In this document: positions 36,757-57,235 of the stretch, one piece after another
How positions within the stretch are numbered: the stretch's first letter is position 1
How the letters are laid out: every line of letters begins with the position of its first letter
From: Paraphysomonas bandaiensis
Taxonomy: Eukaryota; Protista; Chrysophyceae
Assembly (NCBI GenBank): GCA_965644295.1
Contig: CBFFRP010000298.1
Location: forward strand, 124,001 to 188,000
DNA length: 64,000 bases
Direction: 5' to 3'
The notes under the pieces: generated by a model
Seen by the model: only the letters and a program-made list of their open reading frames with translations
Databases searched by the model: none
Told to the model about the DNA's origin: nothing
Translations under genes and position numbers: made by a program

Positions 36757-37525
36757 AATACGGTGAATACAACAATATTATTATTATATAGCTATAACTG
36801 TGAAACTGAAGTATTGTACCACGACTCTACAAGATACGGAAGTTGATCAGTGGATGACATGAACAAAGTATATTATCATGTTGTTAATGAGTTTTACTTT
36901 GTGACGTAACCCGGTTTGATAACCAGAATCACGGCTCGCAGTACAGGTATACCACACAAACACGCAAGTGTAAGAACAATGTATTATTAAAGCTGTGACT
37001 GCTCTCTAAGCAATAACCTAATGCCCAGTTAATGATTTCCGCCAGAAATCACCACGCAGGTAACACCGCCAGTGCAACAAGATCGTTGGCACCAAGCACT
37101 TCGGTTAAGCCTAAACATGTGCATAACACCATCATAGCATACATGTTACACACACTCCTACTCCTCAACAACATCACAACACCCTGCAACGTCATCACTA
37201 CCCACAGAAACGTGTTTATTCTATAAACTGAATACCCACAGCAACCTAAGGAGCAACGTATAACCGCATACTAATAGTACATCATATCCTACGTTTACTT
37301 TCTACCTAAATACCCATACAAAAAAACAGTATACCGCCACTTTGGTGTATTTTAGCATTCAAGAACCCAAAATCCCTAATATCCAGGTTATACGTAAATA
37401 CAACCCTGCATACCAGGTATTGCATATCACAATTGATTCCCCTATGACGTAACCCGGTTTGATAACCAGAATCACGGCTCGCAGTACAGGTATACCACAC
37501 AAACACGCAAGTGTAAGAACAATGT

Positions 37526-39079
37526 ATTTACTTCCCGAAATCCAAGCCAACTCTTAGGCATCTTGAGTTTTACATTACGTTCAATACATCTGTCAATTAT
37601 CATTTCAAACTTCTTGTATGCATCAGCGGGGTCTTTGGCTAAGATCAACATGTTGTCAAATATGACTATGGCCCAATCACTGAAATCAGAAAACAAATCT
37701 CTTACAACCTCTTGAAGAATTCCAGTGGCTGGCGCAATACCTTCAGGCATAAACTTTGGGGCAAATTGACCCCATGGTGTTTGAATAGATAACCTCTCCG
37801 ATGTTTCTTCATGCAATGCTACTTGATGGAACGCATTTGTTAAATCAATATCCATGTATAACGGGAAATTTGTAATCTTTTGAATTTCATGTCTCACATT
37901 TGGGATTGTGTGGTTACCCACTTCCATATGCTTGTTTATCTGGACGTAGTCCCCACAGAATCTTATGTATGGAGGCGTGGCTTTTGGCGCTACCACCAAA
38001 CATGATGCCCAGGGCGATCTACTTTTACCATAGAAATAACCACATAGCCTATGAAATTCTTTCTCCGACGCTTCCCAGAGTTTCGGATTGATAGGTCTCG
38101 CCTTCGGCTTCATACGTTCCGGTAAACTCTCTTTCCATTTTAAACGTAACGGCTCTATTCCTTTTATACCGCTCCATTCCTCTGGAACAAAAACTTTCTC
38201 TGCTTTTCCTTTTAATAAGGCTACTATGTCCGTGTTGCACCTAAGTTCCTCACTAACATGTTTGTCTATCAAGTCATGGTAATCCTGAACTGCTTCTTGT
38301 CTAGGCTTCCCTAAGAAAGTCAATGCATCCCCAAAGTTTACGGGCAGTTCCACTTCAGCTTCCTCTGGCGCTTCCTCATCATTGGATTTTAGCCACGGCT
38401 TGATTAAATTGTCTCTTGTAAACGTATTTGATCTCCTCTGTTTCAGATCTTCTGTGTCTTTCATCTCTTCTATTTGGTTTAATTGCGAGTCTAGGACATC
38501 CTGCTCCTTTAGCTCCTGGTTAGCCTGTCTAAGCAGCTCGTCCATAAAAGGATATAATTTACCAGTGAGTGCCGGCAAACCCAATATTATGTCCTGACTC
38601 TTCATGTCTAAGACGAAAAACTCTCCAGTGTATGTGTGAGTCCTCGCTCTCTTGTCTTCAACTTTCAAATTTAACTTCACTGCCTCCTTCAAAGGTTTCA
38701 CTGTTCGACTGTCCGCCAATATGACTCTGCACTTGGTCTTCATAATATCTTTGTCATCTAATCTACTTCGTATCCTTTTGATTAAATCAGCACTAACATA
38801 ATTTGCTGACAAGGCTCCCGTATCACATAATATATATACTAATTCTTCAATGTCCATTTTTCTGTTTAGCACTACTCTTCCTACCGTGTGACTACTGGAT
38901 AGAATTTTCTTATCTGGATAACTGGCGTATAAAACTGAAGACCTATTGTCTTCTTGCTTCAGTCTACGTAAATCAAAATCCTGCGAAAGCGTTCTCCTCT
39001 TGTCATCTTCACTCTCGCAAGATTCTTCATGCTCGACTTTATGCCTACTATGTACATATTCAGTGTCTCTACTTCCTAG
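37526..39079 (-). pseudogene. pol: Gypsy family A pol, 3'-truncated (protease plus most of RT)
   Basis: Protease LCDTGA; RT motifs SPWAS, RFCGDY, DLTNAFHQ, IFDN. Matches 52966-54519 and breaks off at 37526. Confidence 0.9.
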
Positions 39080-40708
39080 TCAAGCTCGAGTACCCGAGGG
39101 TTCTCTTCGCATGATGGAAGTTTGGGACGCAGCACCCGAGTCCGAGGTGCCTTGAACAAATTTATCAATCTTTAATTTCATTTCCTTGGCTGCTTTAACC
39201 AATTCTGGACCATGGTGCAAATATTTGCAGTTTTCCCTTCTACATGTCCCAGTCAGTATCTTCTGAAGACACCCATACCTTTTATCAGACTTGACTGGTG
39301 GTCCCACCACGTGTAAATGTTCTGGAATTTGGTCGAACTCCTCATCTGACTCATTCAAATCAATACTAAGTGAAGCCTCTGGTTTCAAATCAGCAGATAT
39401 AGTGACCGTAGGCGCAGCTGGTTCTGGTAGATAATCCCTCCAATCATCTTCATCCATAGCTGTTTCCTCTGACACTGGTTGCTCAGTGTCACTTTCTGAG
39501 AGTTCATATGCCCCTCCATCAATAGCATTTAAGGGTTTTATGACACGTGGCTTCGCAAAAACCTTCTTCTCGTTCTCTTTCTTTTCTCTGTAAGTTCTCA
39601 ACCTCTCCTTGTTCTCAATCAGACTTTTGTAAGGTATCTCTAGTACTGCAACGCTCAATTCATATTCATCATAAATGATCTCCGAAAACTGATCAAAAAA
39701 CTCTTGCATCGTCTTGAATTTTGTTTCAGTCATACAAGATAATACATGCTCCACGTATACCGGATCATTACACGTTTTAAAGAGTCGAATCAGTCCTCCA
39801 GGCTTGTCATCAATTCTGGGGCACCAGTCTTTGTTGCCTTCTAACATGATGTTAAGCATCCTACCAAACTCGGAAATCAACTTTAACTGTTGGTGGTAGA
39901 ATGTCTCGTGGTTTACAGGAGAGACTACAGACCACCCCATGACCTTGGTGTGCCTCAAAGCCTCTTCCAACTCTTTGTAGAAAGCCGGTCTAGAAAATAC
40001 CTTTGTTTCATTAGCTATAACTCTGATCAAGTCTGTAATTCCCAACGCCCCTAGCTGGCCCTGAGTCAATTTGTATTTTGTACGCAGATGCTCTTTGCAC
40101 GGCCTGGAAAGTATTTTCTGAACTCTGACCTTAGTATTCTCCTCCTCCTGAAAGTTTATGATGGCTTTTATAGCTTTGGTCACTTTCGAAAGTTGAAAAC
40201 TGTCAATCCGTACATTGCATTCTTTAGCTTGCCTCATTATCACCTCCCCACTAGCAGCCACTTGCTTCTCACTGCTTGCGATCTCTCTGAATATGCTTCC
40301 TCTAACTGATTTTACATCGAATGGATCCGCTTCGTCCTCTTCTTCGGCTGAAAAACGCGTAGGGATTATAGCCTCAATAGATTGCCTTCGCGAGCTTTTT
40401 GCTATCTCTTGCAGAACTGAGGGCCTATCCTTCCTTCGTTTCTCAGATTGCTCTAGCTTAGATTTCAATTCTTCTATGGCTCGGTCCTGACTGGTTTCAC
40501 TGGCCTCTGCTGGAGAATTAGCAGGCGGGGTTGGATTGGGAAAATAACTAGCTCCTTCCAGTACCGAGACCCTCTGTTTCAATTCCTTGAGGTCGTCTTT
40601 GACCTCTGTTACCGTTTCTGTCAAAGTGTTTACGGCACCGGTGATTTGTTCCACGAAACCTTGCATCAGAGCCTGCAGGTCCGTGACAGCCTCTTGACTA
40701 GTATCCAT
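39080..40708 (-). CDS. gag: Gypsy family A gag-like protein (N-terminal coiled coil, C-terminal CCCH zinc finger)
   Basis: 542-aa ORF directly upstream of and in frame with pol; CLQKILTGTCRRENCKYLH. Confidence 0.8.
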   Translation of the reverse strand: MDTSQEAVTDLQALMQGFVEQITGAVNTLTETVTEVKDDLKELKQRVSVLEGASYFPNPTPPANSPAEASETSQDRAIEELKSKLEQSEKRRKDRPSVLQEIAKSSRRQSIEAIIPTRFSAEEEDEADPFDVKSVRGSIFREIASSEKQVAASGEVIMRQAKECNVRIDSFQLSKVTKAIKAIINFQEEENTKVRVQKILSRPCKEHLRTKYKLTQGQLGALGITDLIRVIANETKVFSRPAFYKELEEALRHTKVMGWSVVSPVNHETFYHQQLKLISEFGRMLNIMLEGNKDWCPRIDDKPGGLIRLFKTCNDPVYVEHVLSCMTETKFKTMQEFFDQFSEIIYDEYELSVAVLEIPYKSLIENKERLRTYREKKENEKKVFAKPRVIKPLNAIDGGAYELSESDTEQPVSEETAMDEDDWRDYLPEPAAPTVTISADLKPEASLSIDLNESDEEFDQIPEHLHVVGPPVKSDKRYGCLQKILTGTCRRENCKYLHHGPELVKAAKEMKLKIDKFVQGTSDSGAASQTSIMRREPSGTRA

Positions 40709-40993
40709 AACTACTTATAGTTATTTTCGGTGAATAGCTTATTGGGGTAATATACTATGAACGTGCAAATCTGTCCGTACTGGATCAGGTATTTCTTCCA
40801 ACTCACTGTTCCCAAAATTGACTTAAAACAATTACAGATTAGTCAGCTAGCTACGATAATTGTCTGTTATGTTCCTATGTGTATACTAAGTTTTCTGCAA
40901 CAACTCTACTGTCTTGACGTGCAAATCCGTCCGCACTGTACAAGATGAGATACTATTACGTCAAACGTCGACGACACAATGAGATATAACTTC

Positions 40994-41258
40994 CAATCTA
41001 AACAATTGCTATGTACTACTCAATTTCGCAATATATAAGGCCTTATGGGACTTATAGTAATATTACTATGCACAAACCAGACTTGCGGGTTTGCTCCCAA
41101 CAAAATGTATAATAAGGTGTGAGTAAACACTTATTATTACTGTTAAATCACCCAACACGGTCAACGATATCCGCTAGATAACGCCGCGCAGTATTCCCTC
41201 TAAGAATAAAGATCGCTGTTAAGACAGTGTCAAGTAACTTAAAACAATGACATGCAAG
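40994..41258. repeat. 265-bp direct repeat, copy 1
   Basis: Identical by eye to 43261-43525. Confidence 0.9.
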
Positions 41259-43260
41259 ATGGCTAACCGGGTTTTTACGCAAGTTGGACAGTTGGATATA
41301 TATTCTGCTACCACCTGATATGGTATTCCATGCCCTGGAAAACGTTTATTGAGACGAATCCAAGTAGCTTTCCCTCCAAGATGACCCACGCGAGAGTTGT
41401 GTACCTCACGCAAGCATTCCTCACGAGATATATTCATGGAAGGTTGTTCTTGGTCACTGAGATCCGACGGGTCCATAAAATTTCCTAGGAATGAGAAATA
41501 CTCAGAATCCTGACAGTCCTCTCCCAGAAAATAGGCATCATCCCACATAGAATCATCCAAGAACATGCCCGACAGATAAGCCAGTTGGTGTTCCCTGGAT
41601 AACCAGTCTGCTAACCAATTCTGTGCTCCCGAAATATGTCGGATTTTAAAATTGAATGATTGCAAGAATATTCTCCATCTAACAATTTTTGGTACCTCAG
41701 ACGCTTCCATCCAGAGCAAATTGTTATGGTCTGTTTCTATTGTAAACTGCTTTCCAACTAAGTAATACGCTAGCTGTTTAACCGAATAGTAGATACCATA
41801 GCCCTCCTGCTCTATAGTAGCCCATTTCATTGCTTGCTCTGAAAACTTTTTAGAGATAAAGGCAATAGGTTGCAATTGAGCTTCTCCTGACGGTAATATC
41901 TTCCGTTGTAGTAGTACAGAACCTATACCTAGCTCACTTGCATCAGTCCGTAAAATCCACTCTAACTCATAATCAGGGTAGAAGAGCTCACAAGCATCTT
42001 GTAAACCTTTTATGAAACGTTTGTACTCAGCTTCATAATCATGACGCCAAGTAGATTTATTCCAATTGAAAGATTTCTTAGTGAGGTCCGTTAAATGACC
42101 TACTAAGTCAGAATACTTTGGCGTGAAGCTGGAAAAGAAAACTCCCTTGCCTAGCAGAGATCTAGCTTGTTTAGTCGATGTTGGCATAGGTATGTTTGCC
42201 AACGCTTCCTTTTTATCCGGACACACTTCATACGATTTGTGTTTGCACACATATCCGAAAAAATTAACTTTCTTAAAACCAAGCCAGCTCTTAGCCATTT
42301 TCAACTTGATGTTTCTCTCCAGACATCTGTCAATAACTCGTTCCAACTTTTCATAAGCATCCTGGGGATCGTTGGCTAGTATTAGCATATTATCAAAGAT
42401 AACGATAGCCCAGTCTGAAAAATCGGCAAATATCTCCCGAACAACCTCTTGCAGAACACCAGTAGCAGGCGCTATACCCTCTGGCATGAAATTAGGTGCA
42501 AACTGTCCCCATGGCGTTTGAATGGACAATTTTTCGGAAGTTTCCTCATCTAAAGGTATTTGATGAAACGCATTTGTAAGATCTATATCCAAATAATATG
42601 GAAAATTAATGATCTTGTCAAGTTCATGTTTGACATTGGGAATAGTGTAGTTTCCCACATGCATATGATCATTGATCTTAACGTAATCCCCACAAAATCG
42701 AATATAAGGAGGTGTAGCCTTGGGCGCTACTACAAGACAAGAAGCCCATGGCGATCTACTCTTCCGGTAAAAATACCCACACAGACGACGAAATTCTTTC
42801 TCTGAAGCTTCCCATAGCTTCGGATTAATAGGCCTCGCCTTGGGTTTGATCCGATCCGGAAGTGTATCTTTCCACTTAATTTTTAAAGGTTCAACACCCT
42901 TTACACCAGACCACTCATCTGGTACAAAGACTTTAACCGCTTTAGTTCGTAGGAGATGCATCACATTTGTTTGTTCCTTCATCTCACTACTAACATGGGT
43001 CTCCAACAACTGCTCATAGTCTTTTAAAGCTTCCGCTCTAGTCTTTCCTAAGAATACCAAAGCTTCTTTAAATTGAACCGGCAATTCGGAATCCTCTTCC
43101 TCCGGTGCAATTTTAGTACTCGCTTTAGACCATGGTTCCACTATTTGTCCATGCTCTAAGCCAGACAAATCATGAGTCGAAATCTTCTTGGAATCACTTT
43201 CTATCTCATAAGATGTTTGTTCAAAAGCATGCCTCATCGATTCACACATAAAGGGATACA
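41259..43260 (-). pseudogene. pol: Gypsy family B pol fragment (RT, RNase H, integrase HHCC), open throughout but truncated at both ends
   Basis: 680-aa ORF homologous to but distinct from family A; RTDASELG, ETDH, H..H..CPTC. Confidence 0.9.
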
Positions 43261-43525
43261 CAATCTAAACAATTGCTATGTACTACTCAATTTCGCAATA
43301 TATAAGGCCTTATGGGACTTATAGTAATATTACTATGCACAAACCAGACTTGCGGGTTTGCTCCCAACAAAATGTATAATAAGGTGTGAGTAAACACTTA
43401 TTATTACTGTTAAATCACCCAACACGGTCAACGATATCCGCTAGATAACGCCGCGCAGTATTCCCTCTAAGAATAAAGATCGCTGTTAAGACAGTGTCAA
43501 GTAACTTAAAACAATGACATGCAAG
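43261..43525. repeat. 265-bp direct repeat, copy 2
   Basis: Identical by eye to 40994-41258. Confidence 0.9.
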
Positions 43526-44323
43526 GAATAACATATAGAATGGTACGCATCTACAGAATGAACCAAGTTCATTTTATATCACACACACCACACCGCATGC
43601 ATTCTTGCATACACCGTGTATACCACACGTATTATGACAATAAAACAAAACTGAATAACAGCGTATGAAACTGAATAACTGCGCATAAAACTGAAACTAC
43701 CTACATAGCATAAAACTGAAATAAAACCATAGTGATAAAACTGAAAAACAGCTAACTAAAATGAGTAACGTAATACCGTATTCGCTGATAGTCTACTGCT
43801 CTTATCATACTCCCTAAACTCATATAAAACTTATTGCATCTTTACTCTCTCTATATATTCCTCTTTAAGCCACACGCTTGCCATAATAGCCACCCACTAT
43901 GCCTGCTTAGCAGCATCACCATGCATAGCGTCTATAGCATGCTCTTGAATGGTCCTAACTCCTGCTCATCTCCATATCCAGAGCACCATTAAGTCGGAGG
44001 AAGGCGATGACCAGGTCAAATGGTCAAAACCAGGCCAAATAAGCTATTACCTAAAAAATTGTATTTTATGTGTCTAGATTCTTTCTAACATGTTTGTAGC
44101 TTGTTTCTACTGCTCAAAACATTATATTTGTTCATTATTTACAAAATAAAATTAGCGATACAAGCATTATAATTACCAAAATATATAACTATTAACTATA
44201 ATATATATTATACATATAACAATATTCAACAGTTAAATCATAATATATATATAGTTAATAAAGCGTTTGAGAATTACTCAAACATACGAGCAGTACAACT
44301 AATCCAGGATACAAACAACATGA

Positions 44324-45905
44324 TTACATAGGCTGATACTGTGGGGGATACTGGAGGGGATAGTTAGGTGGTTGCATGGGAGGCGTTACCACGTGTTGCT
44401 GTGGCTGCATACTCAAGATGAAAGCCTCATACGTTTGAACCTGCAGCTCAGCTTCATTCCAGCGTGAAGTACGTTTACCTTGATTAAGAAGAGCTTGCGC
44501 TTGCATGTATTGCAAAGGAGAGGAAAGGGTAGAAGAGCAGGGCCCAAGTGTCATTTGTTGTGCCGTTGGCTGCATGTGAGGGGTGTATGTGGGTGTCACA
44601 GGTGGATACCCGCCAGTGAATTGTTGAGAAGGAGTCCCAACAACTTGAGGAGTTGGTACAGGAGTGCTAGGCGTACTTGATGATGCGCTACGCTGCAGCA
44701 GCTGGTCCTCAAGCAACTCATACTTTCTCTTTTGCTCCTCAAGCATCCGAACAAGATCTTTTTTCAAGGGAATTTTTGACTTCTTGCTTGTTGGTAAGTC
44801 ATTATCAGTCCCACCGTCTTCTACCACACTTTCGTTCTTAACCTTCTTTTGGTCGTTCTTAACAGCACCCTGCTTTGATGCTCTCGTAGCAGCTGCACGC
44901 TTCGCTTTTGCCTTGCCCCTACACTTCTTATCATTGTGGACTGCTATTAGTGTGGACACCAGTGGTTCATGCTTAGTGTTTCTTTTCGGATTACGCCTCT
45001 TGCGGACCTTTTCGTTAGTCGCTGCAAGTTGCCCTTCGACAATTGGGTCAAAGCCATCAACAATTAGGTGGCCCTGCTCATCCTTGTTTGGTCCATTCTT
45101 CGAATCCCAGAATAAAGGTGTCAAGAACTTCACTAGATGAACTCCCATTTGGTCAGAATCAACTTCTTCATCAAGCAAATAGTCCAATTCGAGTACATGC
45201 TTACTGATTCCAGTCCACAAAATAACAACTTCGCTGTCGACGTCCCAAAGCACGACGTCGTAGCGAGGCCTGGCGCTCTTTGTCCGAAGGTAGCATAAGA
45301 TAACGTACTCCTTTCCAGTTTTATAGTTCCGAGTGCGGACCATAGACAGGTGAATAATCTTGGTGCTCGTATTGAAATGAGCACCAAGGACATAATAGTT
45401 GAAGAGCGGCGGGATAGACGCCATGACTTCGGGGTTTACGAAGAGTCGAAGTGTAGCTCCATCCATCTGAAACTTCTTCCGAGCGTAGCAGTGACTCCTC
45501 CCTGAGTACTCAATCGAAAAGGAAGCTTCAGTGGTCATAAAATCGTCAAGGAATTGATGGCCCCTGGTATTGCTCCTACCTTTCTTTGCGTCTGTTTTCT
45601 TGTTTGTTTGCAATGCATATGATGAATCACAAGCTGTGAATAAAAATAAGATCATTTGTTTGATTTCACTCACTGCACGACTCACCATCTTCTGCTGTTT
45701 CTGTTTTATCATCATCAAATTCATCAAGGAATGCTGCAGCTGCATCCATAGCACACTGGGAGCACATCGAGGAGCTTACCCCTCTATCTGATGACCTAAA
45801 CGTTTTGTTGCAAGAAGTGCAACAGACAGGACCCGCCGGCATTTCCTGAGAGCCACCACTGGAGTACATATCTAGAGTGTTGGAATATGAATCCAAGTCA
45901 TCCAT
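44324..45905 (-). CDS. Transposon accessory protein, ~509 aa, two exons: N-terminal CxxC...CxxC, central globular domain, basic region, coiled coil, P/Q-rich tail
   Basis: Exon 45905-45686 joined to 45633-44324 via a 52-bp GTGAGT...CAG intron keeps frame (EDA-CDS). Confidence 0.75.
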
Positions 45906-46377
45906 TACTTTAACATGTATGCTGTATATATGTGTCTATATATGTGTATATGTTTATATGTTTGTAGTGTATGTGTGTGATATCACTGAGAGGAGTGGAT
46001 TTGATGACAAAACAGCAACTCAACTCAAAAAAATGATGGAAGAAATTCCGAATTCCGAATACGATCCTCTTTTTTTAGTTCAACACTTCGACTTCACTTC
46101 ACTTCGACCTCATTCATCATCATCACATGCATACATGTATACATACATATATATTCCACTCATCCATAATATATACATACATACATAGCCTGAGACTCTA
46201 GTAATATCACAATCATTTAGATCAAACTCTCTGCAGTGCATCTCTCGGTTCGTTGCGCTATTTTCATCGTTTCAATCTGCTTGCTGTGTGAGCTGTGGAG
46301 TTGTTCGCAACAGGTATAGAGAATTTCAGTGCCCTCCACTCTCTGCTTATCGTGATATTATTGTCACCAACAGAACA

Positions 46378-46879
46378 CAGCACTAGCTGACTAGTTTGAC
46401 GGTTGTATGCTGCTCCGCGTCAACAGGTTACAGCACTAGCTGACTAGTTTGACGGTTGTATGCTGCTCCGCGTCAACAGGTTACAGCACTAGCTGACTAG
46501 TTTGACGGTTGTATGCTGCTCCGCGTCAACAGGTTACAGCACCAGCTGACTAGTTTGACGGTTGTATGCTGCTCCGCGTCAACAGGTTACAGCACTAGCT
46601 GACTAGTTTGACGGTTGTATGCTGCTCCGCGTCAACAGGTTACAGCACTAGCTGACTAGTTTGACGGTTGTATGCTGCTCCGCGTCAACAGGTTACAGCA
46701 TCAGCTGACTAGTTTGACGGTTGTATGCTGCTCCGCGTCAACAGGTTACAGCACCAGCTGACTAGTTTGACGGTTGTATGCTGCTCCGCGTCAACAGGTT
46801 ACAGCACCAGCTGACTAGTTTGACGGTTGTATGCTGCTCCGCGTCAACAGGTTACAGCACCAGCTGACTAGTTTGACGG
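46378..46879. repeat. Tandem array of 9 complete plus 1 partial 53-bp units
   Basis: Unit cagcactagctgactagtttgacggttgtatgctgctccgcgtcaacaggtta; only positions 6-7 vary. Confidence 0.97.
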
Positions 46880-46982
46880 GAGTGTGTATTATTATTCGTG
46901 TATTGTGTATATATAATATATTATATTGATTAAAATATTATATAATCACAATAATAACATCTTCATTTTGTTGTTGCGGTAG

Positions 46983-49655
46983 ATGAAATGTCTTTTGAAA
47001 ACAGCCCACCAGGCATGCTGTTGCCTCATATGTGTCCTATGTTGCGCTTGTGAGGGTTGTACTATTTACCGTGCGTTGAACGATACATACCTGGACGAAA
47101 CGCAGGACCTTATGATCGATTGTATGAAAGAGGTGGCAAGGAAGAATGCAGAGCAGCGGAAGCAGTATTTTCTTGATAAGTGCCGATCGTTTGAGTGCCG
47201 CGTAACTGTGTGCGGGAAGTACAAGCTAAATTTTATTGCTGGTACTGGGACACTTGCCACACGTGTCTGTCGGCAAGGTTTTCTGAGTGCCTACTGTATC
47301 TCGAAGTGGTATCTTGATAATATTGTGTCAATGATGAAGGCGGGTTATACTTGTGTAACTGCTTCCTTCAACGATCGTTCCGCGATACCTGCGGAGTTTC
47401 GTTCGAGCAAAGACTTGTTGAAGTTTGCTGATTCGTATGACATCAAGCTGTCCATGGAGATGCTGGGAAACGTAAATATGCCTAATAGTGTGTCTTCTCT
47501 TATTGCTGTAGCATGGATGCAGTACTTTTTCAGTTTGGTTGGCGATTGCCCTCCTTGTGGTACCGAGGAAGTTCACCTTGACCAATCGACAAAGCATAGC
47601 ATCTACGATGAATACGTTAATGATATGAGTGCTTTTGATAATAGCAGAGATCCGCTTTCTGAGCGCTCTTTTTTAGAGCTGTGGCGAAATGTGTACAAGC
47701 ACGTCAAACGTCGTAAGTTCAAGCACTGCTGTGGGAAGTGCAATGTATGTTCCGCTTTATCCGAGTTAAGGAGGAAGTATCAGGACAGCAGAGGGCGTAG
47801 GGAGGTTACCATGCTGTTTAACATGCACCGTATTACTTTCATGGGTGAGCGCCGTATGTACTATACACGACGAGGTCTGGGACTAATGGAATCATGGGCT
47901 TATATTTCCGGTATTACTGATGGAATGCAACAGAATAGATGCTTGCTACCATGGTTTGGTCACAAAAAAGCTCCACCTAAGCATTTGAAGCAGCACCTTC
48001 AAGGACTTTTGTTGCATGGTCGTAGCCTTGACATTTATCGCTCGTTTTCCAATGTTAGAGTTACAGCCTCGTTTTGTATATATACGTGGCTTCTGAGTCT
48101 TGAGAAATTGTTCGTTGCGAATGGGCGCAAGTCTGTGGGAACAATTTTTCATCAGATTGATGGTGGATCAGAAAATGCCAATGTGTTGTATTTGGTGGTG
48201 TGCTTCATGTTAGTGTTATATGGAATTTGTGAAAAAGTTGTCTTGACTCGGTTATTGCCGGGCCATACCCACGAGGATATAGATGGACTCTTTGCCCTCA
48301 TATGGAACTATCTGAAGGACAGGCACTGTCTCAGTCCAGATGAGTTTGAAGATGTCATCAAATCCGCGTTGCAGAAGTACGAGGACAAACTTGAAGTGAA
48401 GAATATACTTGTCGTCCCGGACTTTTCGGATTGGTTCGACGGGTTAGTTGACCCAAAGGTTGAACGTTTTGCAAAAGAGGAATGGACTCAACTGCAGTTC
48501 ATTTTTGAAAGAGTCGAGCCCTCGGAGAGGTATGAGCATGGCGTGAAAGCTACTTGTCGGCCGTATGCAAAAGATGAAGTGGTTGAGATTGTGGATGACC
48601 CTGACCAGGATTCGATCACCGGGCTGATCCCTCAGCTTACCAAGGTCAACATTCAACCTGCAGATGAAGACCCTCCCTTCAATTTTTTATTGCGGTTACC
48701 ACGAGAGGCTAAAGTATTTAAGCCGGAGCCTTTTGTTGCGATGAGTAGACAACATGCATTAGTTTGCTCAAATAAGATGATTCAATCCTACACTGGTAAG
48801 AATCCTGCTGTGGTGGAGAGTTGGACGCGGTGGAGAGACAGTGTGTTGCCACAGTCTGATGATGCAGATGAATACGTAGCCGAGCATCCCATGTACATTC
48901 CCTTTAAAGACCAACTCTTCTCTGGTAATCCAGCTCCAGAGAGGAGTTCATTGGAAAGAGCAGATCATGCTACAACCCTTGATGGCGTGACTCTTCCGCC
49001 AATGAGAGTTGTCGAGAGTACAACAAGCAGTCTGTGTCACTCTGGGAAGCCCAAACCTTCTTCCAAAAAACACGAGACACCTGCTCGTCTTGTAGTCCGT
49101 GAGAGGGATGGTTCTGTGCCATCTCAACCAAAGGAGGCCCGGGCAGGAATTATTGTTACCCAGAAGACTCCAAGAAAAACGCAGACGAAGAAGGGGTATT
49201 CATCTGGCAAGAAGAAGGAGTCAGCGACAAAGAAGAAGGGCTCTTCTTTCAACTCTGACATGATTACTAGTGACGATATTGATGGTTTTGTTGCGGAAGT
49301 CGAAGACGAGGAAGAAGAGTCAGAATATGAGGAAGAAGAAGAGGAGGGAGTTCGAAACTTTGAACTTGGTGCTGTGATTCAGAACATGCATCGCCTGCGC
49401 GGGACTATCACAGCTTGTCATGACGATGGATCCTATGATGTGAAGTACAAAGACGGTAGAACTGATGAGAATGTGTCTTGGAAGTTGCTGTTCCCTCCTC
49501 CGGCTCCTCGAAAGAGTACTTCTAGCAAGAAAGGTTCGTATGAAATGATGGTTGTTCCGGATGACTACAAGTGGGTGGATACTGGGGCTGTTTCTTCCGC
49601 CATTCACTCTGTATCCGGCAAGCGCAAGCGATCGAATGTAAATTATAAAATGTGA
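46983..49655 (+). CDS. DDD-type transposase (Sola-like by motif recall) with C-terminal Tudor-like domain
   Basis: 890-aa ORF with CGKCNVC...H zinc motif and candidate catalytic ITDGMQQ, QIDGGSEN and LLPGHTHEDID. Tail RGTITACHDDGSYDVKYKDG..DENV; NLS-like KRKR. Confidence 0.8.
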   Translation: MKCLLKTAHQACCCLICVLCCACEGCTIYRALNDTYLDETQDLMIDCMKEVARKNAEQRKQYFLDKCRSFECRVTVCGKYKLNFIAGTGTLATRVCRQGFLSAYCISKWYLDNIVSMMKAGYTCVTASFNDRSAIPAEFRSSKDLLKFADSYDIKLSMEMLGNVNMPNSVSSLIAVAWMQYFFSLVGDCPPCGTEEVHLDQSTKHSIYDEYVNDMSAFDNSRDPLSERSFLELWRNVYKHVKRRKFKHCCGKCNVCSALSELRRKYQDSRGRREVTMLFNMHRITFMGERRMYYTRRGLGLMESWAYISGITDGMQQNRCLLPWFGHKKAPPKHLKQHLQGLLLHGRSLDIYRSFSNVRVTASFCIYTWLLSLEKLFVANGRKSVGTIFHQIDGGSENANVLYLVVCFMLVLYGICEKVVLTRLLPGHTHEDIDGLFALIWNYLKDRHCLSPDEFEDVIKSALQKYEDKLEVKNILVVPDFSDWFDGLVDPKVERFAKEEWTQLQFIFERVEPSERYEHGVKATCRPYAKDEVVEIVDDPDQDSITGLIPQLTKVNIQPADEDPPFNFLLRLPREAKVFKPEPFVAMSRQHALVCSNKMIQSYTGKNPAVVESWTRWRDSVLPQSDDADEYVAEHPMYIPFKDQLFSGNPAPERSSLERADHATTLDGVTLPPMRVVESTTSSLCHSGKPKPSSKKHETPARLVVRERDGSVPSQPKEARAGIIVTQKTPRKTQTKKGYSSGKKKESATKKKGSSFNSDMITSDDIDGFVAEVEDEEEESEYEEEEEEGVRNFELGAVIQNMHRLRGTITACHDDGSYDVKYKDGRTDENVSWKLLFPPPAPRKSTSSKKGSYEMMVVPDDYKWVDTGAVSSAIHSVSGKRKRSNVNYKM

Positions 49656-49944
49656 ATTGGCTTGGGACTTTTGTATGATTATATGATATTATTTAACGTG
49701 TTTTATATATATGAATTTTTACGTATATTATTATAGTTAATAGTTATATATTATGGTAATTATAATGCTTGTATCGCTAATTTTATTTTGTAAATAATGA
49801 ACAAATATAATGTTTTGAGCAGTAGAAACAAGCTACAAACATGTTAGAAAGAATCTAGACACATAAAATACAATTTTTTAGGTAATAGCTTATTTGGCCT
49901 GGTTTTGACCATTTGACCTGGTCATCGCCTTCCTCCGACTTATT

Positions 49945-50438
49945 ATGAAAATGCATCTCACTGAGGTATTGGGCTGTGTACATCCATAGTTCTGCACTTA
50001 ACTTGAGACATTTATGTTCAGGATGTACTAGCAACATCTGAAGATCACTTCTTATGCTGTTCTGAGGATGATGCAGAGAGAATTGTGTGTACATCACGTT
50101 GATGCTACCTAAGTCTCTCTCCATTGCCCTTATTGCCTCTACGTCATAGAACAACAGGTGCAGTCGGCTGGCTTCACATGTATTGCAAGTAGAGATACTG
50201 GGTAACGTGTTTTGAGTGTCGTGATATTAATAACTGCCTATAGAGTAGCCGCATGTATGCACTTCAGTGTGAATGGCTTGTTGTAATTCCGTGACTCGTG
50301 GCTAGATCCTTGCACTTCCTCCGTAAATAATTATCTTGTACTGTTTGCTGTCCGTCTTCTATTGTTGACTCTCTTCTTGTTGTTGAATACCCTATTTCAC
50401 TACTGCAACTTGCTACTATATAAACCCCCAGGGTTACA
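49945..50438 (-). mobile_element. Start of the Gypsy family A LTR, interrupted by the DNA transposon and presumably continuing below 43990
   Basis: Minus strand: A-run and gagagggaaaaagg PPT (50442-50477), then tag, then TGTAACCC at 50438. Confidence 0.75.
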
Positions 50439-50518
50439 CTACCTTTTTCCCTCTCTTTTTTTTTTTTTTTTTTTTTTGTTTCGATAATAATATAACTCAG
50501 TATAAAAATAAGTCAAAA

Positions 50519-53500
50519 TTAATGTTGATTGACTTGGGGAAAACGTAGCGCAAAGTCGGAATCTACCAGTACCATAGTTGTCGGATCGAAGTCGCGATGT
50601 ACAAAACATTTCACATGGTAGTTATCAAATCTGTATGTGGCTTTGGTCATGGGATTCTTGACAGAAATTAGCTTCTTGCTGGTTTTATGATACCAGTGAG
50701 TAAGCATAAATTGCATCACATATGTAACAGTGGGCGAATCTGGTAGTTGTAGAGCATCATACCAGTCATCTCCGAACACTCTGATGTCTACATACGCCTC
50801 GTCACCAGGTTGAACCGTAGTTATGGACTGCTTCCTCTTCTCACTGATATATTTGGCGGCCCCATCCGTGGTATAAATAAGATGATGTAGATAAGGTTTG
50901 CTGCTACAGAATTCCTCATAAGCGATGGAATCAAATAAATCCTGGCTGTAAGGTAGCTCTCTGATATCTCCATCTTTGAAACGAACTGTAAACAACATTG
51001 TTGAACGCCGTTCTCTGTCTCCAGTGTAATATAAAATAGTGTCAATCTCATGCTGATCATGATCTCGCATAGCCATTTTATAGGCTTGTTCCCTGTCTCC
51101 TGGATACAATTTTACATCCCGTACGTCTACTTTTGTTACAACACCGGTCACCAAATGCTTGCAGTCAATATCATTCTTATACTGCGATATAACCTGAAAC
51201 GGTCCTAGGTATCTATGAGACATTTTAGGGTAAACCTTGGCCCCTTTGTCAAATAAAACAAAATCGCCCGGCTGATACTGATTCTGTCGCTGAGGAGATA
51301 TGCCTTTACTGAAACGTTTGGCCTTCAACTTATCTTGATATTCTCTCGAACTGCGTTGCAACAGAGCTAGATTATCATTGAGTTTATGTAGTCTGGCGTG
51401 GGCTTTCTCTGGTACTTCGTCCATTCCCATATTGTTATACCTCTCACTCTCAGAACCAAATGTTAACTCAAAAGGCGAATACCCCGTTTCAGATGAGACT
51501 TCAGAATTCAATACATGTGCCACTGTAGGAATCCAGCTGGGGTCTTCAAATACATCTCGCTTCTCTTCTTTCTCACTGTAATCGAATACTAATGCTCTTA
51601 AATGCCGCACTACCTCTCCTATGATCCTCTCGCATCCGTTGGCATGCCTGTCCGCTATGCTGAATGTGTGTTTGACACCAATATATGAGCAAAGTTGGTC
51701 AAATAATTGGGATTTTAGATCAGGTCCTTGGTCCGATATGATTACGTCAGTATACCAAATTGACTCCAATACTTCCATACAGTATTAGCAAGATTTATGG
51801 CAGTGACTCCCTTCACTGGTTCGAGGTAGACATGTTTTGTAAACAGATTTACCACCACGTTAATATGAGTGTAGCCTTCTTTACCGTGGGGTGTAATTTC
51901 CACTGCATCGATACCGATGGCACTACGAGCTGAAGGTGGTTTTAAACTGCGAGGTATAGCTATCAAAGCTTCTTGCATTCCGAGTCGTGTCTTAGCACAG
52001 TTGGGACATTTATTGATCATCTCGGTGACTTCTTCAAAAGATATTCTGTGTCCCGGGCATTTCTTATTCAATTTTACCCACGTGGCATAAGCTCCTTTGT
52101 GACCTTGTCTGGCATTATGAACTGCTTGAAAACATTCCTCTTTGGATAAATACAACGGTTCCAACTCTTCTTCCTTATCATCCGGATCCATAAAATTGTT
52201 AAGATAGATGTCTAAGTTGCCAAACATAGTTTCATCAATGTATTCCTCAATGTCCACATCAGGAAATATACCAGCCAAATGTTGCAACTTATGTGCTCTG
52301 GAGAGCCAATCTGCTAACCAATTTTGAGAACCTGGAATGTGTCGAATCATAAAGTTAAACGATTGTAGGTATATACGCCATCTCACAATTTTCGGTACTT
52401 CAGATGCCTCCATCCACACTAAATTGTTATGATCAGTCTCAATAATAAACTCCTTGCCCACTAAATAATATGCGAGGTTTCTGACAGCATAATAGATACC
52501 GTAGCCTTCCTGCTCTATTGTAGCCCATCGTTGTGCTTGCGTTGAGAATTTTTTCGATATAAATGCTATTGGTTGTAACTGAACAGTACCATCATCTAAA
52601 ATTTTCTTCTGTAATAATACTGCTCCTACTCCTAGCTCGCTAGCATCAGTTCTTAGGATCCATTCTAACGAATAGTCGGGATAAAATAACTCACAGGCAT
52701 CTTGTAGACCCTTTATGAATCTTCGATACTCCTCTTCATAATCATGCTTCCATGTAGATTTATCCCAGTTGAAAGTTTTCTTGGTCATGTCCGGAAGATG
52801 ACCTACCAAGTCAGAATATCTAGGTGTGAACCCTGAGAAGAAAACTCCTTTTCCTAGTAAGCTTCTGGCCGTCTTAGTACTTGTAGGCATTGGAATATTA
52901 GCCAAAGCTTCCTTTTTGTCTGGGCTAACCTCATAAGATTTGTGTCTGCATACGTAGCCAAAGAAATTTACTTCCCGAAATCCAAGCCAACTCTTAGGCA
53001 TCTTGAGTTTTACATTACGTTCAATACATCTGTCAATTATCATTTCAAACTTCTTGTATGCATCAGCGGGGTCTTTGGCTAAGATCAACATGTTGTCAAA
53101 TATGACTATGGCCCAATCACTGAAATCAGAAAACAAATCTCTTACAACCTCTTGAAGAATTCCAGTGGCTGGCGCAATACCTTCAGGCATAAACTTTGGG
53201 GCAAATTGACCCCATGGTGTTTGAATAGATAACCTCTCCGATGTTTCTTCATGCAATGCTACTTGATGGAACGCATTTGTTAAATCAATATCCATGTATA
53301 ACGGGAAATTTGTAATCTTTTGAATTTCATGTCTCACATTTGGGATTGTGTGGTTACCCACTTCCATATGCTTGTTTATCTGGACGTAGTCCCCACAGAA
53401 TCTTATGTATGGAGGCGTGGCTTTTGGCGCTACCACCAAACATGATGCCCAGGGCGATCTACTTTTACCATAGAAATAACCACATAGCCTATGAAATTCT

Positions 53501-54519
53501 TTCTCCGACGCTTCCCAGAGTTTCGGATTGATAGGTCTCGCCTTCGGCTTCATACGTTCCGGTAAACTCTCTTTCCATTTTAAACGTAACGGCTCTATTC
53601 CTTTTATACCGCTCCATTCCTCTGGAACAAAAACTTTCTCTGCTTTTCCTTTTAATAAGGCTACTATGTCCGTGTTGCACCTAAGTTCCTCACTAACATG
53701 TTTGTCTATCAAGTCATGGTAATCCTGAACTGCTTCTTGTCTAGGCTTCCCTAAGAAAGTCAATGCATCCCCAAAGTTTACGGGCAGTTCCACTTCAGCT
53801 TCCTCTGGCGCTTCCTCATCATTGGATTTTAGCCACGGCTTGATTAAATTGTCTCTTGTAAACGTATTTGATCTCCTCTGTTTCAGATCTTCTGTGTCTT
53901 TCATCTCTTCTATTTGGTTTAATTGCGAGTCTAGGACATCCTGCTCCTTTAGCTCCTGGTTAGCCTGTCTAAGCAGCTCGTCCATAAAAGGATATAATTT
54001 ACCAGTGAGTGCCGGCAAACCCAATATTATGTCCTGACTCTTCATGTCTAAGACGAAAAACTCTCCAGTGTATGTGTGAGTCCTCGCTCTCTTGTCTTCA
54101 ACTTTCAAATTTAACTTCACTGCCTCCTTCAAAGGTTTCACTGTTCGACTGTCCGCCAATATGACTCTGCACTTGGTCTTCATAATATCTTTGTCATCTA
54201 ATCTACTTCGTATCCTTTTGATTAAATCAGCACTAACATAATTTGCTGACAAGGCTCCCGTATCACATAATATATATACTAATTCTTCAATGTCCATTTT
54301 TCTGTTTAGCACTACTCTTCCTACCGTGTGACTACTGGATAGAATTTTCTTATCTGGATAACTGGCGTATAAAACTGAAGACCTATTGTCTTCTTGCTTC
54401 AGTCTACGTAAATCAAAATCCTGCGAAAGCGTTCTCCTCTTGTCATCTTCACTCTCGCAAGATTCTTCATGCTCGACTTTATGCCTACTATGTACATATT
54501 CAGTGTCTCTACTTCCTAG
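50519..54519 (-). CDS. pol: Gypsy family A pol (PR-RT-RH-IN-chromodomain-like) with a 1-nt frameshift at ~51753
   Basis: DTGA; IFDN; TDAS; HHCC; integrase GIDAV, SDQG, NGCER; GPF motif; HEIDTILYYTGD...FTVRFKDG. ORFs 51742-54312 and 50519-51778 join as SQFG-xTDVIISDQG. Confidence 0.9.
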
Positions 54520-54809
54520 TCAAGCTCGAGTACCCGAGGGTTCTCTTCGCATGATGGAAGTTTGGGACGCAGCACCCGAGTCCGAGGTGCCTTGAACAAA
54601 TTTATCAATCTTTAATTTCATTTCCTTGGCTGCTTTAACCAATTCTGGACCATGGTGCAAATATTTGCAGTTTTCCCTTCTACATGTCCCAGTCAGTATC
54701 TTCTGAAGACACCCATACCTTTTATCAGACTTGACTGGTGGTCCCACCACGTGTAAATGTTCTGGAATTTGGTCGAACTCCTCATCTGACTCATTCAAAT
54801 CAATACTAA
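54520..54809 (-). pseudogene. gag: 3' end of family A gag, 5'-truncated
   Basis: Matches 39080-39369; homology stops at 54809. Confidence 0.9.
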
Positions 54810-56819
54810 TGTAAAGCCGTGGGCTTTTATAACACCCTTGTCTCATGTTTAATGATATAATATTATGATAATGACACTGACTAATATAACTCCAATACAA
54901 CTATGATATTCATTTAAGGCATGTAGCTGGTTTAATATAGGAAACGGATGTAGTAAATGTTTATTATTATATTATGAGAGAACTGTGAGGAAGAAGAGTA
55001 CTAGGACTTGCCCTCGAGCACACAATTTCGGTTTTGAGCAATGGATTTCTACTCACTGGTATACACCTATATTCATATGGTAGTCGGTGTCGGTGTTATA
55101 GCGATTTAAGTAGCTCGTTGGACTCAGCTATTATACGACTATTTGCTGTTATCACACTCCATCAATTTTCTCCGGAAGGTGCACAAATTGGAAAGGGGCC
55201 TTAGGCATATGGCGAGAGGACGGTATGGGTGATATATGATACAGATATGAAGGTGTAACTTTCGTTGGGAATGTTAATCGAAATCGATATGTGTTAATGC
55301 ATTTAACGTTTGGAATGAGATTGAGTTTATCATGAAATGAGCTGGCGAATTTTTAGTGACTCGAAAACTAGTGTTTTCTGTTTTTTTGGGACTCTATAAT
55401 TGGTGATTTCTTGCAAGACTCGGGAATTGGTTGTTTTGGGGTCTTTGTAGCTCAGAAATCGGAGATTTTACTGTAAGATTCCAAAACCGGTGGTTTTGGG
55501 GTTTTCGGTCCCGAAATCGGGGATTTTGGTTTTTTCGGGACCAGTAAACTGGCGGTTTTCTGTGAGGACGTTTTCTAGGCTTATTTCAGTTCGCATTTTG
55601 GGTACAATGGACATGGGACATGAACTGTATTCAGTGTACTGCATGTATGGTCATATTTATTGAACGGTGCTGGTTGTTTGCTTGGCATGTGTACTATGGG
55701 GGTCTTAGACTAGGAATCTGTCTTCTCACTTTTTTATCTAACTAATCATAGCTAAGTTAATTGATCTACCTTTTGGGAGCTTAAGGTTGCGAGATACTTG
55801 GGAGCTTGTATATCTGGCTGTGATAAGTTAAATAAGCATTCTGTTTTGTTGTTTCGATAAACAACCATTTCCATATATTTTCAGTGATCTTAGGTTGCAA
55901 GACCTGAGTTGTTTACAGTAAATTTACTCACGATAAAATCACATAAGTGAAGAATAGTTTTAAGGAAATAGATTTTTTAAATTATGTCTGATTCGAGCAG
56001 TCCCATTGTCTTTTCCGAAATGGATGAAATCAAAGGAATGTTGAGAGTAATCGCTAATGAGTTAGGAGAGGTTGCGAAGTTGTGTGCAACGACCGCTGGT
56101 AGGGTGGACCACCTTGAGACAAGGGTTGCCATAGAGCGTTGTTTCATTACTTTTTGTGAATCCCCCCTGTACTTGCCCCCTAATAAGGGGCGTCCGTCGT
56201 GGTTTGCAAAAAACCTCCAGGTTTTTTCCGCCGCGTCCGGACCGCTAAAAAAAGTTGAGAAAAACTTATTTTGCGTCCAAGCCTTTAAAAAACTTCCCAA
56301 GTTTGCGTCCAAGGTTTACGACCTTTGAAAAACTTTGAGGAAAAATTATTTAGCCCGCACCGCAGGTGCGGGATCCCGCACCCTTGTTTTTACACAAAGG
56401 CCGCACAGCAAGTGCGCCCATCGAGTGATCCAATCAGCAGAGTGCATCATATCACATGCATCGAGTATATGTATATAGTAATATGACGAGGCAGCCATAT
56501 GCAGCAGATACACGTTAATGAGTGCTTGAATGATAGGTGATAACATGTTGCTACCATCTTATTTCATGAAACTGTGAGATGAGATATGCAGTTAGTGGAC
56601 GAGGTTTATAAGGCTGTATGGAGAGGAACTGTGAAGGGCTGTATATTATGGTATGAAGTGATATGATATGGATATCAATGATTGAATTCCAGGTAATTGC
56701 ATCATGCTCCCATCATCCTATTTAAAGTGTCAGGTATGCAGAGAGATGAGAAGTGGTACATTTGAAGGAATAGAAGGCTGTATATCATGCATGCACTATG
56801 TTGTGTGATGGTATATGAG

Positions 56820-57235
56820 ATGCTGAATGTTGTCATGGTTTATTATGCTGTTGTAGGCGCAATGACGTTTATACTTACCGGTGCAAGAGGGATGCCTAAG
56901 CGACACAAGCGCCCGGCTGCCCCTGTACCATCTTGCAGTGAATATGTGTCATGTTGTGTAAGGGTATGCAGTATGGCTGTATGTGATAAGAATTCTGAAC
57001 GGTGTGGAATAATAAAATGCTGAAGGCTGTGATGGTTTATTATGCTGTTGTAGGCGCAATGACGTTTATACTTACCGGTGCAAGAGGGATGCCTAAGCGA
57101 CACAAGCGCCCGGCTGCCCCTGTTCCATCTTGCAGTGAATATGTGTCATGTTGTGTAAGGGTATGCAGTATGGCTGTATGTGATAAGAATTCTGAACGGT
57201 GTGGAATAATAAAATGCTGAACGCTGTGATGGTTG
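56820..57235. repeat. 197-bp tandem duplication
   Basis: tattatgctgttgtaggc at 56841 and 57038. Confidence 0.9.

Follow-up and report, generated by a model that had tools for sequence, protein, structure and literature searches.

The 64,000-nucleotide stretch of Paraphysomonas bandaiensis DNA analyzed here (the window; contig CBFFRP010000298.1, positions 124,001 to 188,000) carries an element of 5951 bp that is bounded by terminal inverted repeats (TIRs) and encodes a transposase together with a second protein, ORF2. With a probability of roughly 0.8, this element is a cut-and-paste transposon (class II, TIR), autonomous and active in the recent past, that belongs to a DUF7869/Sola1-like lineage of marine protists. 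An earlier reading made without database searches (the sequence-only reading) had described a young, intact two-gene TIR transposon, and this description was borne out. The two TIRs are 100% identical, the target duplication and both reading frames are intact, a second copy in the same genome is 99.9% identical, and near-identical copies occur in marine samples, among them a marine metagenome contig (PRJEB4352, L100) that is 99.7% identical over 3 kb. From these signs of youth the element is probably still mobile.

The boundaries were established by comparing an empty with a filled site. The arms at 43990-44203 and 49729-49942 show 100% complementarity; the outermost pair belongs to the duplicated target, leaving a true TIR of 213 bp, which is the length that had been estimated before and is perfectly complementary rather than nearly so. 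The element is flanked by a multicopy repeat with 41 matches in the genome searched, a 62.5-Mb eukaryotic assembly containing the window. One uninterrupted copy of this repeat (G000:C297:6640-6800) reads CACC-ATT-ATGAAA and carries the diagnostic single-nucleotide polymorphisms of the window flanks. It is a paralogue with 98-99% identity to these flanks, not an allele. The filled site in the window reads CACC-ATT-[AAGTCGG...CCGACTT]-ATT-ATGAAA. Taken together, the two sites define the element as 43991-49941, with 213-bp TIRs and a 3-bp duplication. The sequence-only reading had proposed either ATT or TA as the duplicated target, of which ATT is supported by the empty site while TA does not fit it; moreover, the empty site predicted for a 3-bp target site duplication, gagcaccATTatgaaa, was found exactly in the uninterrupted paralogous copy.

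Other copies had been proposed as a means of fixing the termini and the duplication length. Four further insertions were mapped (see table), and a 3-bp duplication next to AAGTCG...CGACTT ends was found to fit all five independent insertions (ATT, TAT, ATT, TAT, and GTT). The AAGTCG terminus is common to the window element, C139, C656, L102, L103, and L104. Subterminal ACCAGG or CCTGGT words are present in five of the five mapped insertions, and in the window the left TIR contains both a subterminal ACCAGG and a GGTCAAA motif. The AAGTCG termini and the subterminal ACCWGG words are thus kept across lineages and organisms. Other framings of the target were discarded: a 4-bp duplication (ATTA) is compatible with the window site alone and gave no consistent framing across the other four insertions, and TA and TTA were ruled out by the empty site and the other insertions.

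Features of the window element and of four related insertions. Positions without a contig prefix are those of the window.
Feature	Position	Strand	Basis or remarks
Whole element, 5951 bp	43991-49941		AAGTCG...CGACTT ends
Target duplication, left copy, ATT (3 bp)	43988..43990	.	paralogous empty site and flank reading
Left TIR, 213 bp, begins AAGTCGGAGG	43991..44203	+	100% complementary to right arm
ORF2 exon 2, stop included	44324..45633	-	ORF, spliced coding sequence, homologue alignments, AF2 model
ORF2 intron, 52 nt, GT..AG	45634..45685	-	absent from transcript contig; joint in RNA runs
ORF2 exon 1, from start codon; CxxC...CxxC zinc ribbon and start of acidic linker	45686..45905	-	translation; Cys pattern in paralogues
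Intergenic stretch without RNA cover	45981..46378	.	depth zero in three RNA runs, DNA run covers
Tandem array of 9.5 copies of a 53-bp unit, with 0-2 differences between units	46377..46879	.	repeat detection
Transposase gene, 890 aa, intronless, stop included	46983..49655	+	ORF and Pfam DUF7869
Winged-helix (RFX-like) segment, residues 197-245	47571..47717	+	RFX_DNA_binding and PDB RFX5 matches
RNase H-like catalytic core, residues 305-445, D313/D393/D434	47895..48317	+	alignment and model
Small C-terminal beta-barrel (Tudor/Agenet-like), residues 795-838	49365..49496	+	model; sub-threshold profile matches
Right TIR, 213 bp	49729..49941	-	inverted-repeat match
Target duplication, right copy, ATT (3 bp)	49942..49944	.	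paralogous empty site and flank reading
Related insertion, this genome	C139:78946-84906		ends AAGTCG...CGACTT; duplication TAT
Related insertion, this genome	C656:8892-15046		ends AAGTCG...CGACTT; duplication ATT
Related insertion L103 (5.7 kb)	ENA ERZ25071330		ends AAGTCGCC...GGCGACTT; duplication TAT
Related insertion L104 (5.7 kb)	ENA ERZ25071330		ends AAGTCGCC...GGCGACTT; duplication GTT

The transposase gene is a single uninterrupted frame, as had been read from the sequence. Residues 332-489 of the protein match the Pfam family DUF7869 (PF25273) with 68.1 bits (E 1e-18; the gathering cut-off of the family is 26 bits), and the same family is matched by all 50 aligned homologues. Altogether 103 homologues were found in metagenomes and genomes, none of them named, and DUF7869 is unmentioned in the literature searched. 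The alignment of 50 shows no variation at D393, G427, H428, H430, or D434; D313 is kept in 90% or more of the sequences, and the N-terminus is conserved and rich in cysteine. The spacing of the triad is D-80-D-41-D, with no insertion domain. In the AlphaFold (AF2) model (pLDDT 80), the elements of the RNase H fold follow the canonical order beta1-3/alpha1/beta4/alpha2/beta5/alpha4, with D313 located on beta1, D393 where beta4 ends, and D434 in the helix that follows beta5 (alpha4). The protein therefore has an RNase H-like core with a DDD triad, which is one of the features by which Sola/Sola1 transposases are recognized. Upstream of this core sits an RFX-like winged helix: RFX_DNA_binding is matched by 24 of the 50 family members (best E 3e-5), and the family profile matches RFX5 in the PDB with E 0.0019. 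The transposase had also been described as Tudor-tailed. A small beta-barrel is indeed modeled confidently in the C-terminal tail (four strands, pLDDT about 95), but the profile matches that would identify it as Tudor or Agenet stay below the Pfam thresholds (Agenet E 0.024; PTM/DIR17 Tudor E 0.033). Foldseek matches of the whole protein were weak and included Mos1, TnsB, integrases, and RNase H.

The element had been assigned to an undescribed lineage, which in the strong sense no longer applies, as the transposase falls in a Pfam family that Atlas clusters place in plants, oomycetes, molluscs, and arthropods, and its core is Sola1-like. DUF7869 transposases with 25-41% identity were also seen on 1.5-6.4 kb contigs in lake and marine metagenome-assembled genome (MAG) bins labeled as bacterial (L082-L088; Bacteroidetes, an actinobacterium, and an uncultured bacterium). 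These homologues most likely represent eukaryotic contamination of the bins and, on that view, are no evidence on a bacterial origin.

The second gene, ORF2, contains a long frame (44324-45754, minus strand) that diverges from the transposase gene. The sequence-only reading had seen two uninterrupted divergent genes; the divergent arrangement and the intronless transposase gene hold, but ORF2 is split by a 52-nt intron. The spliced coding sequence (45905-45686 joined to 45633-44324) gives a protein of 509 aa. Likewise, the zinc ribbon attributed to the partner protein is present (CCTSC...CSQC), but it is encoded by the separate exon 1, outside the long frame. The same cysteine pattern is found in four paralogues (L053, L063, L070, and L074). 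Exon 2 encodes a beta-rich conserved core of ~200 aa, a basic tail, a coiled coil, and a P/Q-rich end. The splice joint linking 45633 to 45686 was detected in three RNA runs (X11, X17, and X9) and was not seen in the DNA run X1. A transcriptome-type contig, L099 (JGI 3300017004, Ga0186469_103218), lacks exactly the 52 intron nucleotides. This contig opens with 665 nt of ankyrin-repeat coding sequence that is not in the window (L099:1-665), and its zinc-ribbon exon has a 7-nt deletion. Based on these two features, L099 is taken to derive, as a chimeric or read-through transcript, from a decayed copy carried by a related strain.

ORF2 homologues with 32-43% identity adjoin diverged transposases (mostly 42-51% identical) on nine contigs of this genome (C345, C656, C538, C351, C139, C93, C132, C546, and C435), and the pair is divergent on nine out of nine. 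These homologues share a common plan of zinc ribbon, acidic linker, ~200-aa core (LRTKC..PRYD, PNKDExG), and basic tail, with the C-terminal half (coiled coil and P/Q-rich end) being specific to the window subfamily. An exhaustive profile search recovered 95 relatives among 1.84 billion representative proteins. No Pfam family was matched by ORF2 or by any of 50 scanned homologues, and a Myb/SANT domain, the lack of which had already been remarked on, was matched by neither ORF2 nor these 50. Two homologues were placed in other assemblies (P0113 and P0116), the pairing being seen in L102 and L103/L104: P0113 is divergent from an 886-aa gene, and P0116 is arranged tail to tail with a DUF7869 gene of 903 aa in two different genomic places. 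A third external homologue, P0110, is on a 2-kb contig with no informative neighbor. Wherever ends were mapped, the pair of ORF2 and DUF7869 gene was always inside the TIRs. Since the pairing recurs in two other assemblies and, within this genome, in nine or more diverged lineages, ORF2 is a trait of the lineage and not a one-off capture of the kind that the sequence-only reading had named as a refutation. The AF2 model of the ORF2 core shows a beta-rich domain with pLDDT >90. In VIA-align comparisons BAH domains came first (Z 4.3-5.5), below the level that would mean more than a common barrel, and a resemblance of the modeled core to BAH is only a lead. A complex prediction for transposase residues 1-660 with the ORF2 core scored 0.00, which is evidence neither way.

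Expression was examined in public data, where 20 runs from 13 studies contain the element and eight of the runs are recorded as RNA. One contig of 2801 nt from a polyA RNA run covers 46958-49758 and with it the whole transposase gene. ORF2 is both covered and spliced in RNA, and the two genes are present in polyA metatranscriptomes. The intergenic stretch 45981-46378 is free of RNA cover and covered in DNA, which argues against DNA carry-over and likely marks a bidirectional promoter. Short RNA contigs were also found on the tandem array, suggesting that the array may belong to the transposase leader.

The second copy of the window subfamily (G000:C204:23461-27155; loci L002, L004, L018, and L047) has an intact ORF2 and is without window positions 46197-48449, which span the array and transposase codons 1-489. 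It has 657 bp of left flank in common with the window copy; the right flank is unrelated, and the 3 bp on its two sides form no duplication (ATT vs TAG). Judged by these flanks, the C204 copy looks like the product of a rearrangement, of inter-copy recombination, or of an assembly join, rather than of transposition.

A mechanism can be proposed that would join these parts. By means of its Cys-rich N-terminal part and its winged helix, the transposase would bind the element ends at the subterminal ACCWGG words, excise the element, and integrate it with 3-bp staggered cuts. ORF2, with its zinc ribbon, acidic linker, beta-barrel core, and basic tail, may act as an obligatory or stimulating helper. 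Like the second proteins that PIF/Harbinger and CACTA elements encode, it could serve in binding of the ends, in nuclear import, or in tethering to chromatin. The untranscribed stretch of ~400 bp between the genes would serve as a promoter for both of them. The array would lie within the transposase leader or where it begins, and one upstream ATG per unit may damp transposase output.

The 53-bp array had been noted between the genes and was recovered there in 9.5 copies, with 98% matches among units and a G+C content (0.52) above that of its surroundings. Each unit contains two inverted TGACG words (TTGACGG ... GCGTCAA), a density of 38 per kb compared with 1.4 per kb for the window, as well as one ATG on the transposase strand. 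Related subfamily copies on C597 and C661 have a related 50-bp unit in at least 17 copies. The TGACG words are kept in the 50-bp unit of C597 and are not found in the arrays of other lineages. These lineages (C93/C346, C139, C538, C28, and C37) have unrelated arrays of 68 to 260 bp, likewise located between or directly upstream of the genes. The reading of the array unit as a hairpin was rejected, its folding being not significant (z -0.87).

The presence of an intergenic array is a trait of the family rather than a one-off capture. Whether the array is the element's own cis module, as the sequence-only reading proposed, is doubtful, as its position recurs and its sequence does not. It may instead be a neutral minisatellite of the kind that arises easily in a long spacer, a possibility that falls somewhat short of even odds. 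The arrays of different lineages have periods from 50 to 260 bp and no words in common, none was found in the intergenic region of C345 or in the convergent L103/L104, no words beyond chance are common to the window unit and the TIRs, and the near-identical units look as they would after recent slippage. Neutrality is harder to reconcile with the finding of arrays, in about seven separate lineages, either in the spacer between the genes or immediately upstream of them, with the elevated G+C content, and with RNA contigs that cover the array but not the neighboring 400 bp. A comparable question arises for ORF2, which could be a passenger, that is, a captured or co-opted host gene without a role in transposition, or a regulator serving the host. 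It has no recognizable transposition-related domain, its predicted complex with the transposase gave no answer, half of the protein is subfamily-specific, and the gene order varies from divergent in the window element to convergent in L103/L104. However, the linkage to the transposase has been kept despite the divergence of both proteins, and even the internally deleted C204 copy retains ORF2 intact, so that a passenger role appears very unlikely. As for the element as a whole, it might have been immobilized or domesticated recently, remaining transcribed and no longer transposing. The low copy number of the subfamily, whose other copies are deleted or decayed, would agree with this, as would the C204 copy, which shares the left flank only and points to rearrangement. 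Nevertheless, perfect TIRs, an intact target duplication, two intact frames, and near-identical copies in marine samples of 13 studies make loss of mobility unlikely, and domesticated genes usually lose their TIRs.

The superfamily of the transposase is a separate matter. It is filed as Sola1-like, a placement held at somewhat better than even odds. The sequence-only reading had noted that the GHTHEDID and DGGSEN motifs resemble Sola-type transposases, and this resemblance is supported by comparison with published cores. Those of Sola1-1_AP, Sola2-1_HM, Sola3-1_HM, and Zator-1_HM are given in supplementary material by Majorek et al. (2014; PMC3985635), and in a comparison by eye with Sola1-1_AP and an aphid Sola1 protein from that source the motifs agreed. 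Four motifs are closest to Sola1, namely the stretch D..QQ..LP that follows the first Asp, the alpha1 helix motif G[AS]N...[CW]LL..[IL]E, D-x3-4-[EQ]N-x-N around the second Asp, and PGHT ahead of the third. In a 2025 survey, custom profiles were used for Sola and the Zator domain was taken from Pfam 37 (PMC12973397). This suggests that Pfam had no named Sola domain at that time, and would fit DUF7869 being the unnamed Sola1 family. Conversely, the hallmark of Sola1 is a duplication of 4 bp, AWWT (PMC3845634), and the 3-bp duplication of all five insertions is instead what Zator, which resembles ISAzo13, and ISAzo13 itself produce (PMC10045372). The element could thus be a far-diverged Zator type in the Zator/ISAzo13 branch of the IS630-Tc1-mariner assemblage, with its 3-bp duplication inherited. 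In the Atlas shape search, the nearest families beyond DUF7869 were four ISAzo13 (PF07592) clusters and then IS630, the best ISAzo13 cluster reaching TM 0.73 by target over 231 residues. One arthropod Atlas cluster has DUF7869 in 95% of its members and PF07592 in 11%. An hhalign comparison with eight ISAzo13 transposases brought the second and third catalytic motifs into register, pairing DGGSEN with DGGGSN and PGHTHEDID with PGTSKWNKIEH, and the DGG[SP][ED]N of the family resembles the DGGPDEN that Zator-1_HM has at its second Asp. The E value of that comparison was only 0.14, however, and similarity to ISAzo13/TP36 at the sequence level was not significant: among the 50 members there was no match to PF07592 or to the ISAzo13 models of NCBIfam, this genome lacks PF07592 altogether, and an Atlas feature search skipping DUF7869 returned nothing. 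Furthermore, the first-Asp motif, the alpha1 motif, and GHT are nearer to Sola1-1_AP than to Zator-1_HM, and DUF7869 occurs in plants (Atlas), where the active clusters of a plant survey included Sola and no Zator (PMC12973397). A Zator origin is therefore considered rather unlikely. Still more speculative, and improbable, is that elements with AAGTCG ends, 3-bp duplications, and two genes form a separate, undescribed superfamily-level lineage bridging Sola1 and Zator/ISAzo13, in which a helper with a zinc ribbon and a BAH-like barrel, together with the Tudor-like tail of the transposase, would read chromatin marks and steer integration into particular chromatin (e.g., silenced retrotransposons), and the lineage-specific arrays would be binding-site arrays or leaders rich in upstream open reading frames through which each lineage regulates its own transposase.

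Several points weigh against the interpretation of the element as an active, autonomous Sola1-like transposon with a helper protein. The empty site is a paralogous repeat copy rather than an allele, and only one full-length copy of the window subfamily is present in the assembly, the rest being deleted or decayed. Mobility is deduced from signs in sequence and expression, and no transposition event has been observed. The RNA evidence consists of assembled contigs, from which strand, transcript ends, and level cannot be derived. Searches of ORF2 against the PDB (Foldseek) and by Atlas shape returned nothing significant, and its requirement for transposition and its binding to the transposase are putative. 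Finally, the Sola1 placement comes from motifs compared by eye, with a 4-bp duplication lacking.

The transposon is nested among multicopy repeats (window 37000-57000), and its flanks match dozens of places at 93-100% identity; one of these is on the same contig, where C298:176966-178818 corresponds to window 37526-39377. A sister lineage on C93, C132, and C346 (G000:C93:1850-8648; L070, L025, L071, L024, and L023) is 6.8 kb long and has both genes and a 249-bp x 4.7 array. Its right end is the usual one (...CATCAACTT; ...CATCACATCAACTT). At its left boundary, which is AT-rich, neither a TIR nor a target duplication was seen in two copies with different flanks. At C661:32082-35291, 100% copies of window 39365-41259 and 54807-55921 adjoin a 96% copy of the TIR and a 50-bp x 17 array, an arrangement that suggests nested repeats or a duplicated or haplotype contig in a repeat-rich region.

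Few groups of DNA transposons need a second protein, and each of them has shed light on the recruitment and restraint of transposases. Here, a putative helper with no clear fold match is tied to a widespread and almost unstudied transposase family (Pfam DUF7869, Sola1-like). Transcription of the pair in the open ocean, together with its apparent mobility, makes it a testable system and possibly the source of a transposon tool for use in diatoms and further marine protists. In addition, the combination of a 3-bp duplication, Sola1-like motifs, and an ISAzo13-like fold bears on the relationships among Sola, Zator, and the IS630-Tc1-mariner assemblage.

Among known systems, Tc1/mariner (ITm) elements were considered and rejected: their TA duplication misfits the empty site, no DDE_1, DDE_3, or Transposase_1 match was found, and the likeness to Mos1 and IS630 is at the level of the fold alone. 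CACTA/En-Spm elements are similar in having two products, a 3-bp duplication, and repeated binding motifs near their ends. They differ in having Transposase_21, which the window transposase does not match, together with CACTA termini and subterminal repeats, as opposed to the AAGTCG termini and central repeats found here. PIF/Harbinger elements carry two genes, a transposase and a helper, that are both required for transposition. The two-gene plan and the AT-rich 3-bp duplication are shared with the window element, whereas the DDE_Tnp_4 transposase and Myb/SANT helper of PIF/Harbinger were not found by Pfam here. Neither Zator nor bacterial ISAzo13 (TP36, PF07592) is known to carry an accessory gene. 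They resemble the window element in their 3-bp duplication (PMC10045372), as the nearest named fold, in DGG[SP].N at the second Asp, and in the spacing of the second and third acidic residues (43 in ISAzo13, 41 here). They are unlike in giving no significant sequence match, in having Glu as the third residue where Asp is found here, and in the first-Asp motif. Sola1 (Bao et al., 2009) shares the DDD RNase H core, the matching motifs at the three catalytic residues and in alpha1 (including PGH[TS]), AT-rich targets, and a long element, about 5.4 kb in bivalves (PMC10294476). It is set apart by its 4-bp AWWT duplication (PMC3845634) and, in insects, by GGACCG instead of AAGTCG termini. A conserved second gene and an intergenic array were not found described for Sola in a search that did not include Repbase. 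The element is a novel variant within the known transposon types rather than a new type, and it carries a conserved second gene whose zinc-ribbon and beta-barrel protein is undescribed.

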